Shown: positions 39,830 through 46,720 of the stretch, piece by piece
Position numbering within the stretch: position 1 is the first letter of the stretch
Layout: each line of letters opens with the position of its first letter
Source of the DNA: Amoeboaphelidium protococcarum X5
Taxonomy: Eukaryota; Fungi; Aphelidiomycota
Reading direction: 5' to 3'
Assembly (NCBI GenBank): GCA_023515725.1
Contig: JALDTO010000207.1
Coordinates: 83,572 to 147,571, forward strand
Length of the DNA stretch: 64,000 bases
Translations under genes and position numbers: made by a program
The notes under the pieces: model-generated
What the model saw: only the letters and a program-made list of their open reading frames with translations
What the model was told of the DNA's origin: nothing
Databases searched by the model: none

Positions 39830-40521
39830 TTGGAGCTGTAATCAAAAGAGTTTTAGTTTGATGTATTGTAAGGTAATATAACTCTCAACTGTGAATGGCC
39901 TTAAAATGTAACATGTTGAAAACGCATAGTCATCAATTAGTGTGTTGCGATGCGTTTATTAATAGCACTGGAGTTCGCCAACAGCGGAGCTTGTAGCTTG
40001 TAGCTTTTGCTCAGCTCGGCTAGCTGTTTCTAATAAACGGTATCAATTGCACGTGTATATAGTGGGAAAAAAACAAAGTAAAATAACAACACCAAGCATA
40101 TAAAGAAAGAAATCATAATTTCAGCTAATTTTATGAGTGAAGCCTTTGCAAGCAGTTAAAAATACTGACCAAATAAATATACAGGGACAACAAATAATCA
40201 AATACTTTTCAAAATCAAAACGTAAAAAACATTGCAATTTGCTTGATGCACAGGCATAACATATTGGATAGGTACCTTATTTTTGTTTAGAGAGCTGCTC
40301 TGCCAATTTATCGCCCGGCGAGACTTTTGTCGTTTCTCGAGAAGAGGCGCGACGAAAGCTTGGCAGCAGGACCTTGGAAGGAGTTGAACCCATCCGCTCT
40401 TGTAATCATATTAGAGAACCATGTCTTCCAACAACAACAAAAAAAAACTTCTTGTTGACCTAACTTAACTTTAGATGATTATATAGAACCAAGTATGTAG
40501 TCAAAAAAGCAAAAAGAATTG

Positions 40522-40594
40522 GAGCGCCTAGTGGATTCGAACCAATGACCTTCGGATTATGAGACCGACGCCCTAGCCGCTGGGCGAAGGCGCT
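40522..40594 (-). tRNA. tRNA-Met (CAT), elongator-type anticodon and T arms
   Basis: Cloverleaf AGCGCCT-TC-GCCC..GGGC-G-TCGGT CTCATAA TCCGA-AGGTC-ATTGG TTCGAAT CCACT-AGGCGCT, with a B-box and a downstream T5/T6 Pol III terminator (plus-strand A runs 40503-40515). Confidence 0.9.
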
Positions 40595-40608
40595 GAGTAA
40601 ATACTGAA

Positions 40609-40845
40609 TGTTACAGTCGTGCAGACTGATCAATGATCTTTGCCTATTGTGGCTGAGCAACGTTCCCACGCCTCCTCAAGATTATACAATCAAGTTCTCA
40701 CGATAGATGAGATCCATCTCTTTTGATCATCGTGTTAATATAGTATTCAACTTATTTACACGTTTTTACCTTGCTTGTCTGGTTAGATCCTGTATAGTCA
40801 GTCTAAGTTCCCCTGTCTAGTATATCAAGTAGTCCCGATCTAACA
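40609..40845 (+). repeat. 5' LTR
   Basis: Identical by eye to 45535-45771. Confidence 0.97.
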
Positions 40846-40846
40846 C

Positions 40847-40856
40847 TTAACACGAT
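40847..40856 (+). other. Self-priming primer-binding site
   Basis: TTAACACGAT is the reverse complement of ATCGTGTTAA in the LTR (40729-40738). No TGG-type tRNA PBS is present. Confidence 0.7.
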
Positions 40857-40867
40857 CCATAAGTATC

Positions 40868-41839
40868 ATGTCTGACTTCCGTGCCACAACACCTGAAGGT
40901 GTAAATGCCGAAATGTTGCATGCGTTGCATAATGCTCAGGTTCACAACGAGTAGTTATAACAATAGATTGCTGCATATGAAAATTAGCGTTTGTCCACTC
41001 CAGCCCAAGTTCCAGTGTCAGTAGAGTAAAATTCAGTCATCTTGCCTTCCAAGTACAATGGTGAGCGTGAACTGTTCCGTGGGTTCAGAAATTAGTTAAC
41101 CATCCTGTTTAAAATCCATCCTTAAAGGTACAAGAGCGACGAGATTAAAATTATGACCGTCATATCTTTGCTGTCCGGTAATGCCTTGTAATGGGTCAAT
41201 CCAATACTAGAACATCCGAGTAAATATCCAGATACTTTGGCCAATTATGACAGGTTTATGAGCGCGTTAGCTGCTGCATTCTAGCCTATTGAGCAAATGG
41301 CAATTGCTGGGAATCGAATTAAGCTATTGAAGCAACTGAAGAAGACTGCATCTGTATACTCTACTGAATTTTTAAGTCTTGCTTCCGACTTAGATTGGAA
41401 TGATTCTGCACTAATGTTCTAGTACAAGGATGGGTTATCTTATCAGGTTAAGAAGATGTTATTAGGATACCCAGAACCAAGCAAATTGCAAGAGTTGATA
41501 GACTTATCCATCAGATGTGACTAACGTCTGTCTTTGTTTCATGCTGCAAATGGCAGAGTTGTCAATAATCAATTATTCCAGAATATCGCTAATAATCGCA
41601 TTCCGTAATTTGGTCCTGCTAATAATCATCAAGTTGTTCCAGCTGCAGTTCCAGTCAACAATCCAGATGCTATGGAGATAGATCAAATTCAACGTGGTAG
41701 ATTGTCGCCAGAAGAGAGAGCCCGTAGAATCGCCAATAATTTGTGCATCGTCTGTGGTTAGACTGGTCATTGGAGACGTGACTGCCCATTAGCTGTTCGT
41801 AACCGTCCAGCGCGCCGTGCATAAGTCAATGAGCAATGA
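40868..41839 (+). CDS. gag: Retrotransposon Gag (323 aa) with CCHC knuckle
   Basis: LPSKYNGER, LSGNALQW, LDWNDSALMFQYKDGL, AMEID, CIVCGQTGHWRRDC; ends at TGA41837. Confidence 0.93.
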
Positions 41840-44800
41840 CAGTTAGTTAATGAAGATGATAATGGTATTGAAGTAATATTGAATCTGAACTCAATTTCAT
41901 CTTGCAAAATTCAACTTAACAGTACAATCCTTATTGGCACATAATCAATCAAGGCTATACTTCTACTGGATTGTGGTGCTGATGTCTGTTTCGTCAGCCA
42001 GAAGTTGGTGGATACTTACAAGATTCCAGTGGTTCAATTGAAGTAGTCCATTACTGTCAAGTTTGCCGATGGCAACGAGGATCATTGCACCAAGATTATC
42101 CATCAAACTACACCCTTATAGTTGCATATTGGTGAACATATTGAAACGATTACCTTCCTGGTGACTTAATTGTCATAAGATATCATTCTTGGCATGTCTT
42201 GGCTGAAGCAACATAATCCGCTGATTGATTGGATCTAAGAGAAGGTAACATTTAACTCTGATTTCTGCGTTATCAACTGCGTTGTTCATGAAACTTCTGT
42301 CTATAGTAATGCTTAGTCCTCTTCTAGTGTCAGATTGGAATAAGAGTCTTTAAAATAACCTGCTCCAAAGGTCTCTTTCAATCTGAATTCTATGGTCTAA
42401 TCCAATAATATAGAGATGGCAGACAGTCATCTTGCCATCTTATCTAATGTTGATTCATCTACACAAACAGAATAATAGCTAAAAGAAATTAATTCACCTA
42501 GTTCTGCTTCTTCAGCTACTGCAGTTAAAGTTTCTACTGAGATTCAAGTGGATGTTTCAGAAATTCAGTCGTTGGTCGAAGAAGAGAAGCGTTCCATTGT
42601 TCTGGAGATTGATGATCTTTACACTCAGATGCGTGATATCTCTGAAGTTCCGAATAATACTGATCATGTTAATTAAGAGTTGCCAAAGTAAATAGCTGAT
42701 TATTAAACTGTGTTTGACAAGAAGATGGCTGATTAATTGCCGCCTCATCGCGCGTCTGATTGTACTATTGATTTAAAGCCTGGCCCTGAACCATTCTTTG
42801 GTAAAGTCTATAGTCTGACTAAAGAGGAAGATTTTGCCTTGAAGGAATGGTTGTAAAGTAATATTGATAAAGGTTTCATTCGTCCAAGTAAAAGTCCATT
42901 TGGTGCACCTTGTTTTTACGTGAAGAAGCCTGACTGGACTGGAGATAAGAAGTTACGTCTGTGTATGGACTATCGTGCATTAAATAAGAATACAATTAAG
43001 AATAAGAATCCAATGCCTTTAGTATCTGATATATTTAGAACGCTGCAAAAAGCTAAGATGTTTACTACTTTGGATTTGGTTGGTGCATACAATTTATTGA
43101 GAATAAAGGAAGGCCATGAATTTAAGAGTGCATTTCGAACTAAGTATGGTTCATATGAGTTTTTGGTTATGCCTTTTGGACTTGCAAATGCTCCTGCTCA
43201 GTTTCAGACTTTTATGAATGAACTGTTGAAAGACTAGATTGGAAATTTTGTCATTGTGTTCATTGATGACATTATTATCTATTCAGACAATGAAGATGAG
43301 CACTGGTAACACGTCCGTGAAGTTTTGGAGATCTTAAGATAGAATAATCTTTACTGTAATATTGCCAAGTGTCACTTTGCATAGCGAGAATGTAAGTATT
43401 TGGGTTATGTTCTTTCAAAGGATGGGTTGTCAATGGACTTGCGTAAAGTTGAAGCTGTTTTGAAGTGGCCAAATCCAAAGAACGTGAATGAAGTGTAAAT
43501 GCTGCTTGGTTTTCTTAACTTTTACAGAAGACTTATTAAGAACTTTGCTAAATTGACCATGCCATTCACTCTGCTGCTGAAAAAAGATGTTCAATTCTGT
43601 TGGGGAGAAGAGTAGAAGGCTGCATTAGAGTAGATGAAGAAAGTTTTTGCTGATCCTCAATTTCTCATGCATCCGAATGAAGAGAAGCCATTTATTGTTG
43701 AAACTGACTCGTCTGATTTTGCCATCGCTGGTGTTTTGTCTTAATATGATGAAAATGGTGAATTGCGTCCTGTTGCGTTCTATTCTCGTCAAATGATTCC
43801 TGCTGAGCGTAATTATGAGATTTACGATAAAGAATTGCTAGCTATTCATGAATGCTTTAAAGAATGGAGACACTTTTTGTAAGGTGCTGATCATCAAGTC
43901 ACTGTTTTGTCTGATCACAAGAATCTGCAATACTTTATGGAAACAAAGTAGTTAACGCGTCGTCAAGCTCGTTGGGCTACATTCTTTGCAGAGTTCGACT
44001 TCGTTCTTACATATCGTCCTGGAAATAGAAATGGCAAAGCTGATATACTATCTAGAAGGCCCGACTATTACGTTGAAAATGATAAGGCTAATTTCTTGCG
44101 CATTATTGATCCTAATCAAGTAGTTAACGCGTTATCATTGGCTGTTTTTGGTTCAGTTGATCAAACGGTGACTATTTAAGAAATTGAGACTGTGAATTAA
44201 CTAGATTGGCCTCTTTATGTAAAGAAATGGCTAGTTTCTGGCGAATGGAAAGCAGATTTGCCTGTTGAAGTTTTGTAGTTATGCAAAGATCAAACTAAAC
44301 ATTTCTCTCTTGATGATTCTGGTAATCTCTGCAGAATTGCTGATGATGGAATAACTAAAAGTTGGTATTTACATCCTTCTTCTCGTCTGGAACAATTGGA
44401 AAGACTGCATGATAAGCTTGGTCATTTGAAGAACGACTCAATTGCTGAATTGATTAAGAGAAGATACTGGTGGCCAAAGATGGATCAAGAGATTAAAGAT
44501 TACATTTCTCGTTGTGCATATTGTTAACTTGATAAGTCCTAATCTACTTCTGTGTCATCCACTCCTATTAAACCAGTTCCACCTGTTGCTTTGCCCTTTG
44601 AAAGATGGGGAATTGATTTGGTATAAGATCTGAGTGAGACTAAGTCTGGTAATAAGCACATTATTACTGCAATTGATTATGCTACACGTTGGGTCATTGC
44701 TAAAGCTGTTCCAAATAGAGATGCTAAGACTGTGGCTAATTTTATTTATCATGAGATTGTAATGAATTTTGGCGCTCCTTTTGAAATTATCAGTGATCGT

Positions 44801-45562
44801 GGTAGTTCTTTCTTGGATGAAGGTGTTAAATACTATGAGAAGAAGTGGAACATTAAGCATCTAGCTACTTCTCCTTATCATCCTTAGACCAATGGAATGA
44901 TTGAACGTATGCATGCTATGTTGCGTCATGCTATTGCTACTCTAGCTGCTGGTAATCCTTCTCGTTGGGATGAATATTTGGCAGAAGCTGTATTTGGTAT
45001 TCGCGTCAGAACTCATGCAGTTACTAAGTCATCTCCATTTTATCTCATGTTTGGAGTAAATCCAAGAATTCCTGGTGATACTCACCCACCATTGTCATCT
45101 ATGAAGCCACTGGATGAATTGGAAGAGATTGAAGTAGAAGGTGCAATTATGGCTAGAACCTTCGAAGAAATGGGTAATGCTAGACGCGCTGCTTATGAAC
45201 GCTCGTTGACTCAAGCTGAATTGATGCGTAAAAGATATAATTTGGATCATAATGCTCCTGAGTATTTCTTCAAGGTTGGTGATTGGGTGAAGTTGAAGCA
45301 TTATGGCAAGAGTAAATTTGAGTTCAATTGGAAAGGCCCTTACAGTGTGGTAGATGTTGGGTTTCCTGGTACGTATTGGCTAATGACTCCGGCTGGCTTG
45401 CGTCTTGACTCTGTTGTTAATGAATCTGATTTGGCTCCTTGGCTTTAACCAACTGTTAATAATGAATCCTTCTTCTATGATGGTACTACAAGAAGAACTA
45501 ATGCTTTACGTCAAGGTTTTGGAGAGGGAGATAGTGTTACAGTCGTGCAGACTGATCAATGA
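41840..45562 (+). CDS. pol: Retrotransposon Pol (protease-RT-RNaseH-integrase), same frame as gag; stop codon lies in the 3' LTR
   Basis: [74 protein letters not shown]. No chromodomain. Confidence 0.95.
45521..45534 (+). other. Polypurine tract
   Basis: GGAGAGGGAGATAG immediately before the 3' LTR. Confidence 0.85.
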
Positions 45563-45771
45563 TCTTTGCCTATTGTGGCTGAGCAACGTTCCCACGCCTC
45601 CTCAAGATTATACAATCAAGTTCTCACGATAGATGAGATCCATCTCTTTTGATCATCGTGTTAATATAGTATTCAACTTATTTACACGTTTTTACCTTGC
45701 TTGTCTGGTTAGATCCTGTATAGTCAGTCTAAGTTCCCCTGTCTAGTATATCAAGTAGTCCCGATCTAACA
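45535..45771 (+). repeat. 3' LTR
   Basis: Identical by eye to the 5' LTR. Confidence 0.97.
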
Positions 45772-46720
45772 TGAAAACTGCTCACTATGCTAAATATATA
45801 GCAATTGAACAAAACGCTTGGTAATTTGACACTCTAAAAATGATATCTATTCTCTGCAATAGCATGTCGAGTAGGCTTGTATCATTTGAATTGAAAAAGT
45901 CTTACTTTAATTACGATCTGATCGATGAGAAACCATTTCAGTTCAGTAATATTTTTGTGTTACGAATTCCTTTTTGGTGGCGTGTAGTCAATCTTCCGCG
46001 ATTGTTGATCTATAGAAAGTTCACAATGGCTTTGACACAGTCCACGCAGTTCTCTTAGATGTCTAAATTAATTTTATAAGACTAGACACTTAATAAATGC
46101 CGGTGATCAACAATCGAAATAGCTTGCTAGCTGTATCAACGCAGAACTCTCCATGAGCCTTGAAGGCGGACCCATCGCGTCATGCGAACAGACTTGCAAC
46201 TACTGTGTTAGTCCAGTTTGATGGGCAGATGTGCTGGTGGTTAAATGGCTTATTGCAAAGAACACCATCTTTGTATAGGCAAAATGACTGTCCTTTTGTA
46301 AACTATTCTTCAGTTCAGATATAGTCTGTATCAGGCCCAGTTAACACCACTCTTCCTACTGCTCAGTTAGATTCTGTTGATCCGCCGTAGAAGAAGGCCA
46401 AGGTGGAAGAGGAGTTGGATCGCTTGTCTCAACCAGTTGTAAGTTGAAGAGGTACTCGTTACTGAAAGTTTCGCGAGAGAGTAGAAGCATTGATGGGCGA
46501 AGATAGAACTGTTAAGCAATTGATGTGGATTGGACAAGGGTGATCATCAACACACTCATTAACGGGGATAGTCAATGGTTGCTCCTGTTGGGTATGGCGA
46601 AAGTCAAATATATATCTAAAGATGGAGACAATAATCACGGCTTGTTGCTTGAAAATTCTATTTAAAAGCTGCAGTTAAGTACGTAATATTATTTGCCACA
46701 ATTACTAGAATATAATCAAT

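Follow-up and report, generated by a model that had tools for sequence, protein, structure and literature searches.

An LTR retrotransposon of Amoeboaphelidium protococcarum, here called family A, very probably encodes an integrase that steers insertion to the initiation regions of Pol III genes, both tRNA and 5S rRNA genes. This habit would be shared by the whole clade to which the element belongs, and would be older than the genome in which we found it. For a mobile element, insertion at the start sites of Pol III genes is the textbook choice of a safe landing place, and it also serves as a model for directing integration to chosen sites by engineering. The habit has been studied well in ascomycete yeasts and Dictyostelium, and now extends to two groups near the base of the fungal lineage, the aphelids and the chytrids. 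The principle itself is not new; what is new is the wider host range and a candidate motif that can be tested.

Anatomy of the element in the window

The analysis was centred on one copy of family A in a contiguous stretch of 64,000 nucleotides (the window). The coordinates of its features are listed in Table 1, together with the insertion sites of families A and B/B'. ARAGORN made a single tRNA call in the window, a tRNA-Met(CAT), and two terminator runs lie 3' of this gene, T5 at 40511-40515 and T6 at 40503-40508 (plus strand coordinates). Apart from the two LTRs, which have TG..CA ends, no long direct repeat was found in the interval of 38-50 kb. The first-pass annotation had placed the 5' LTR 14 bp upstream of tRNA-Met, in divergent orientation and with a 4-bp target site duplication (TSD), and this arrangement was borne out by ARAGORN, Rfam and the repeat search. 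It had also proposed a TATA-like box about 30-39 bp upstream of the tRNA in the empty site. We reconstructed the empty site by removing the element and one TGAA, and the box was indeed found at -39..-30; the insertion has displaced it 5.2 kb from tRNA-Met. The right flank of the element occurs once in the assembly, in which we found no second copy that would give the empty allele.

As to the target gene itself, the end pair of tRNA-Met is A1:U72, as in eukaryotic initiators, and the T-loop (GGTTCGAATCC) and the anticodon stem resemble those of elongators.

Read with the standard code, the element looks broken, as there are at least 60 stops in each frame of its interior. With code 6, in which TAA and TAG encode Gln, the interior has one frame with five TGA codons only. 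The pol gene of the window contains 35 in-frame TAA/TAG codons, and TGA is its only stop. Matches to the integrase across the genome also have internal TAA/TAG codons and no TGA, and the genome reads TAA/TAG as sense codons (code 6). Stop-free pieces of the element were matched by the Pfam domains RVT_1, RT_RNaseH_2, Integrase_H2C2 and rve. The TG..CA LTRs, the TSD and the order gag-PR-RT-RNaseH-IN are those of the Ty3/gypsy class (Metaviridae). The identical LTRs, the perfect TSD and the intact gag and pol under code 6 indicate that the element is young. It is a recently inserted and apparently autonomous LTR retrotransposon of this class, and is 98% identical to a protein of A. protococcarum.

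Table 1. Features of the family A element in the window, and insertion sites of families A and B/B' in the assembly. Positions without a C number are those of the window; distances are upstream of the target gene.
Feature	Position	Strand	Remarks
tRNA-Met(CAT)	40521/40522-40594	-	ARAGORN; Rfam RF00005, 56.8 bits; Pol III target, mature 5' end 40594
Spacer, tRNA +1 to LTR	40595-40608	.	14 bp; sequence read
TSD, left copy TGAA	40605-40608	.	-14..-11 of tRNA-Met
5' LTR	40609-40845	+	237 nt, TGTTACAG...CTAACA; repeat search
Self-primer ATCGTGTTAA (putative)	40729-40738	+	Within 5' LTR
PBS TTAACACGAT	40847-40856	+	Complement of LTR 40729-40738
gag	40868-41839	+	323 codons (code 6), ATG 40868; CCHC knuckle CIVCGQTGHWRRDC
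gag stop TGA	41837-41839	+	Context CAA TGA CAG
pol	41840-45562	+	1240 codons to 45559 (code 6), in the frame of gag
PR DCGAD	41966-41983	+	pol landmark, code-6 translation
RT FIDD	43259-43270	+	pol landmark; RNase H downstream in landmark order
IN zinc H2C2	44408-44524	+	pol landmark
IN DDE	44606 / 44789 / 44891	+	pol landmark
IN GPY	45332-45349	+	pol landmark
IN tail motif NESFFYDGT	45461-45487	+	Candidate targeting motif; alignments
Polypurine tract GGAGAGGGAGATAG	45521-45534	+	Sequence read
3' LTR	45535-45771	+	237 nt, 100% identical to 5' LTR
pol stop TGA	45560-45562	+	Falls inside 3' LTR
TSD, right copy TGAA	45772-45775	.	Repeats 40605-40608
TATA-like TATATATTTA	45791-45800	-	-39..-30 of mature tRNA 5' end in reconstructed empty site
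Family A site 1, window copy			tRNA-Met, 14 bp; TSD TGAA; divergent
Family A site 2, full copy	C146:455715-460879		tRNA-Gly(TCC), 35 bp; TSD ATTC; same orientation
Family A site 3, solo LTR	C192		tRNA-Glu(CTC), 19 bp; TSD ATAA
Family A site 4, solo LTR	C146:915169-915406		5S rRNA gene; TSD TTCA at -3..+1
B/B' sites			tRNA-Gly(GCC), 14 bp; Pro, 13; Arg, 11; Glu, 18
B/B' sites			Two paralogous tRNA-Lys(CTT) genes, 28 bp each
B/B' site			5S rRNA start site

Insertion sites in the aphelid genome

The first-pass annotation had suggested that the element targets the starts of Pol III genes, and had named the placement of other copies as the way to check it. This check was positive. In the 23.6-Mb assembly, all four independent family A insertions with readable flanks were at Pol III genes, as were seven of the eight sites of families B and B'. 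Since the targets and the TSDs differ between the family A sites, these insertions are separate events. Even if all 1171 tRNA candidates were genuine, their upstream 36-bp zones would add up to less than 0.2% of the genome (23.6 Mb), and the chance of four hits out of four is about 1e-11; 63 of the 1171 candidates were scored, and the genome-wide list is incomplete. The resulting picture of placement is a sample rather than a census, and the placements are those of fixed copies.

Two of the family A sites also contain other elements. The solo LTR on C192 has tRNA-Glu on one side and, on the other, an older element of a different family, whose 3' LTR it adjoins. At the 5S gene on C146, the solo LTR is directly followed by a full family B element, of which the 3' LTR adjoins the 5S gene, and the offset given for this site in Table 1 was read after removal of this later element and its TSD (TCAT, at -2..+2 of 5S). 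In the interval C146:915169-921024, the A and B insertions are thus no more than one base apart at the 5S start, and their nested TSDs give the order of insertion as TTCA, then TCAT.

Two further readings of the LTR-tRNA association were ruled out. The tRNA is neither the primer of the element nor a part of it, because the flanking tRNAs differ and both orientations occur. Segmental duplication of an LTR-tRNA unit was rejected because the targets and TSDs differ between copies.

Family B has an LTR of 298 nt and a pol 61% identical to that of family A; B' is a near variant. One B' copy lies 583 bp from its tRNA. Across families A and B, six insertions are divergent from their target and five are co-oriented with it. 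Both sites of the nearest family, A' (pol 72% identical), were free of tRNA and 5S genes to a distance of 1.4 kb. Taken over A, B/B' and A', 11 of the 14 sites are at most 35 bp from the 5' end of a Pol III gene, and a 3' end was never hit. The A' sites (L009/L008 at C207:2316-7387, and L010 on C13) have the same PBS as the window element, and one of them adjoins the end of another LTR family. In the pol of a family B copy (L042 3300-3425, C155), a 36-bp tandem repeat was found between PR and RT, with three overlapping 54-nt copies that are 85% identical; this repeat may explain the differences in length between B copies.

Measured from the mature tRNA end, the distances of the A and B/B' insertions at their targets ranged from 11 to 35 bp, which is looser than for Ty3. 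In a 5S gene, the mature 5' end is taken as the start site of transcription, and the two 5S insertions on C146 fell on it. Both tRNA-Lys genes were hit at the same offset. At the family B site near tRNA-Gly(GCC), a TATA-like TAAATATAAA lies 16 nt upstream of the TSD, and across two unrelated sites a TATA-like box was found 15-16 nt upstream of the TSD. At the 35-bp site, the element went in upstream of a TATA-like box, not downstream. The hits at 5S +1, the equal 28-bp offsets at the Lys genes and the TATA-like spacing imply that the point from which position is measured is the Pol III initiation region and not the mature tRNA end.

Relatives in other genomes and the integrase tail

An exhaustive protein search with the C-terminal piece of the integrase returned 3508 relatives, the nearest of which are on 5-kb metagenome contigs. 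Four of the first five metagenome relatives were collapsed or tandem assemblies, with flanks that could not be used. Three relatives in other genomes were found next to tRNA genes. The element P0002 (L045, GCA_013565735.1) is 69% identical to the window integrase piece, has an ORF that is open under the standard code, and its 3' LTR ends 11 bp upstream of tRNA-Gln(TTG). A word search found Batrachochytrium proteins with 50-56% identity to P0002, none with a chromodomain. In B. dendrobatidis (L049, GCA_036289345.1), the 5' LTR of an element with 99% identical LTRs lies 5 bp upstream of tRNA-Phe in divergent orientation. In B. salamandrivorans (L050, GCA_021556705.1), the 3' LTR of an element with identical LTRs and the TSD AAAA lies 8 bp upstream of tRNA-Glu, co-oriented with it. 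The pol identity between the window element and these tRNA-adjacent chytrid and standard-code relatives is about 50-60%. No tRNA was seen at two older B. salamandrivorans loci or in two half-visible metagenome contigs, each with one flank. Since the chytrid and standard-code relatives already sit upstream of tRNA genes, the targeting trait predates the aphelid families.

Both Batrachochytrium species are amphibian-killing chytrids, and we found no report of their young LTR elements near tRNA-Phe and tRNA-Glu in the literature searched, nor any report there of tRNA-directed LTR elements in aphelids or chytrids in general. Targeting of this kind would explain the LTR debris in front of tRNA and 5S genes that is met in annotating aphelid and Batrachochytrium genomes. 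Many environmental relatives (metagenome loci L044, L047, L048 and L054) are assembled as tandem or end-overlapping units of about 5 kb with a single LTR, and contigs of this type hold no information on the insertion site. Repeat collapse during assembly is the most likely source of these units, with LTR circles or true tandems as possible alternatives.

We calculated an RT-IN tree that left out Ty3, Tf1, Tj1, sushi, DGLT-A and Skipper. The aphelid families formed one clade inside a supported group with P0002 and the Batrachochytrium elements. This aphelid-chytrid group was placed apart from chromodomain-bearing elements of fish, including sushi-like elements, and of ascomycetes, with the deeper forks of the tree unresolved. 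In sequence comparisons, P0002 matched Ty3 Gag-Pol (7q5b; 1.8e-108, 367 bits, over RT-IN) and Ty3 RT (4ol8; 5e-84). P0002 is no nearer to Ty3 than a chromovirus is (367 versus 381 bits).

The members of the group have a putative self-priming layout in common and differ in how pol is joined to gag. A 10-nt complement between PBS and LTR, reached by two of 2000 LTR shuffles for the window element, was found with compensatory changes in A, A', B, B. dendrobatidis and B. salamandrivorans, and at most three of 2000 shuffles reached this length. The pattern points to self-priming of the Tf1/Tj1 type in the window element. In the window element, gag and pol are in the same frame with one TGA between them, and the gag-pol junction of family B likewise has an in-frame TGA, in the context GGG TGA CTC (L042 2538-2540). 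We infer that pol is expressed by readthrough of this TGA. In A. protococcarum, TGA is the sole stop codon. The relatives have other arrangements: L045 and B. dendrobatidis use a -1 frame shift, and in B. salamandrivorans pol is in another frame.

In the predicted structure of the integrase C-terminus, the end of the catalytic core is followed by a helical linker or hairpin and an SH3-like domain; the best structural matches are the integrases of PFV and Ty3. A sequence search of the PDB with this C-terminal piece alone returned the PFV integrase only, and weakly. The first-pass annotation had noted that the integrase ends soon after GPY without a chromodomain, and was right in both respects: 38 residues are left after the SH3-like GPY domain, which leaves no room for a chromodomain, and the chromodomain model (Pfam PF00385) had no match in the window integrase piece or in the precomputed domains of clade members. 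Within these 38 residues, alignments revealed a consensus that is conserved in the clade, N-x-x-[FY]-F-Y-D-G-[TS], and absent from more distant relatives. As the codons of this motif vary synonymously, it is the protein that is under constraint. Model confidence drops to low in the tail of the B. dendrobatidis homologue. We regard the motif as a nine-residue candidate for a targeting module.

From these observations a mechanism can be proposed. The integrase would bring the cDNA to the place where Pol III initiates on tRNA and 5S genes, and insertion would occur either way round and yield a TSD of 4 bp. To this end, the intasome would most likely be tethered to the Pol III pre-initiation complex, probably to TFIIIB on the upstream TATA-like region. 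The contact would be other than that of Ty3, as the integrase lacks even a vestigial chromodomain. It may instead be made by the SH3 domain together with the poorly ordered tail motif, which would bind TFIIIB or Pol III.

Known systems, rival explanations and origin

Ty3 is primed by a tRNA and produces a 5-bp TSD. It uses a +1 frameshift (PMC5911963) and inserts within a window of 2-3 bp, with an integrase of which the C-terminal domain binds TBP and the vestigial chromodomain binds Brf1 (PMC8632968). The window element resembles Ty3 in gene order, in RT-IN homology (by way of P0002), in the use of the Pol III initiation region of both tRNA and 5S genes, and in inserting in both orientations. 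In contrast, it appears to be self-priming, has an in-frame TGA and a 4-bp TSD, keeps a looser distance to its target and lacks a chromodomain. Hence, the Pol III-targeting habit is possible without the chromodomain that Ty3 uses for Brf1.

Apart from Ty3, the Pol III-directed gypsy elements include Tj1, Tca8, Ylt1/Tyl3/Tyl6, DGLT-A and Skipper-2 (PMC5911963). Tj1 of Schizosaccharomyces japonicus is about 5 kb long, and each of its LTRs measures about 240 bp. It inserts just upstream of 5S genes and of tRNA genes, in the latter case at a distance of up to 12 bp, and has a self-priming PBS, an in-frame TGA between gag and pol, a 5-bp TSD and a fixed orientation (PMC4600332). A member of a monophyletic clade of fission-yeast elements, it carries a chromodomain and a gag without CCHC, and its TGA lies in the conserved context GAA TGA CT (PMC10085805). 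Tj1 and the window element are alike in size, LTR length, self-priming layout, in-frame TGA and placement at tRNA and 5S genes. They differ in that the window element has a CCHC gag, the context CAA TGA CAG, a 4-bp TSD, insertions in both orientations and no chromodomain; furthermore, its chytrid relatives have no in-frame stop. In Dictyostelium discoideum, the gypsy-type element DGLT-A lies 13-33 bp in front of mature tRNA ends, and both orientations occur (PMC5911963). This range is similar to the 11-35 bp seen here. DGLT-A differs in its amoebozoan host, in its single ORF and in having no active copies known.

Ty1, an element of the copia type, inserts within a window of about 1 kb. Its integrase has a targeting domain that binds AC40, a short C-terminal segment outside the folded domains that can suffice for Pol III-proximal integration (PMC7459421). 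The tail motif could act in a similar way.

The first-pass annotation had classified the element as Tf1/sushi-type. A PBS complementary to a segment inside the LTR is a hallmark of this group (PMC10085805), and this part of the assignment held. However, the integrases of group members end in a chromodomain, and the targets of Tf1 and Tf2 are Pol II promoters, whereas the aphelid-chytrid clade has neither a chromodomain nor a Pfam match to the Tf2-type SH3 domain. Membership of the element in the group is therefore doubtful.

The preference for Pol III genes might have arisen without any targeting, if insertion were random and only the copies in harmless, tRNA-adjacent places survived in a gene-dense genome. 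The genome is indeed compact (23.6 Mb), and all evidence comes from copies that were retained. Survival alone cannot place the TSDs of two families at -3..+1 and -2..+2 of one 5S gene, however, nor can it explain why insertions cluster within 35 bp of the 5' end and spare the 3' end; with identical LTRs, there was little time for such sorting, and the same placement is met in B. salamandrivorans. The genome of this chytrid is large and repeat-rich. We consider random insertion followed by survival hardly credible. It is improbable, but less far-fetched, that the integrase reads a feature of the DNA or chromatin at Pol III promoters, such as A/T-richness, a bend made by TBP or the lack of nucleosomes, without a specific tether, and that the conserved motif serves another purpose, e.g., nuclear import or cDNA binding. 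The variation in distance from 11 to 35 bp and the A/T-rich TSDs (TGAA, ATTC, ATAA, TTCA, AAAT, AAAA) would fit such a process. Yet, A/T-rich and nucleosome-free DNA is frequent at Pol II promoters, where none of the 14 sites was found, and 5S and tRNA genes have little in common beyond TFIIIB, TFIIIC and Pol III. Moreover, a protein tether is involved in every Pol III-targeting element studied so far (PMC5911963, PMC8632968, PMC7459421).

The remaining question is when the habit was acquired. According to the first-pass annotation, targeting had been adopted as a safe harbour in this compact genome, i.e., a Tf1/sushi-type element would have newly gained it within this aphelid, independently of all other cases. 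Such a gain would agree with the lack of a chromodomain in the integrase, with the differences from Ty3 in primer, frameshift strategy and TSD length, and with those from Tj1 in the CCHC gag, the 4-bp TSD and the two orientations (PMC4600332, PMC10085805). It is nevertheless very unlikely, and the safe-harbour claim had to be abandoned, since chytrid and standard-code elements with a pol 50-60% identical are already placed 5-11 bp in front of tRNA genes and have the tail motif and the self-priming PBS in common with the aphelid element. At the other extreme, Pol III targeting may have a single old origin shared with the Ty3 and/or Tj1 lineage, after which the aphelid-chytrid clade merely replaced the chromodomain contact. 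All of these are fungal-side Ty3/gypsy elements, the RT-IN match of P0002 to Ty3 is about as strong as that of a chromovirus to Ty3, and self-priming and the in-frame TGA are found in Tj1 as well (PMC4600332). The gag-pol strategy varies within the aphelid-chytrid clade, however, so that the TGA in common with Tj1 looks convergent. Pol II promoters are the targets of Tf1 and Tf2, the nearest relatives of Tj1, and the fission-yeast elements form a monophyletic clade with chromodomains (PMC10085805); tRNA targeting has, moreover, evolved repeatedly in retrotransposons (PMC5911963). We therefore find a single shared origin doubtful. Tentatively, we put forward the possibility that an old, self-priming gypsy clade without chromodomain, present in aphelids, chytrids and many uncultured eukaryotes, gained Pol III targeting independently of Ty3, Tj1 and DGLT-A, by way of a disordered tail motif that would dock on TFIIIB or Pol III.

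With respect to the host factors, TBP is encoded by a single gene (C141:26222-26737; L059), in which a stretch of 166 codons without TAA or TAG spans nearly the whole core domain.
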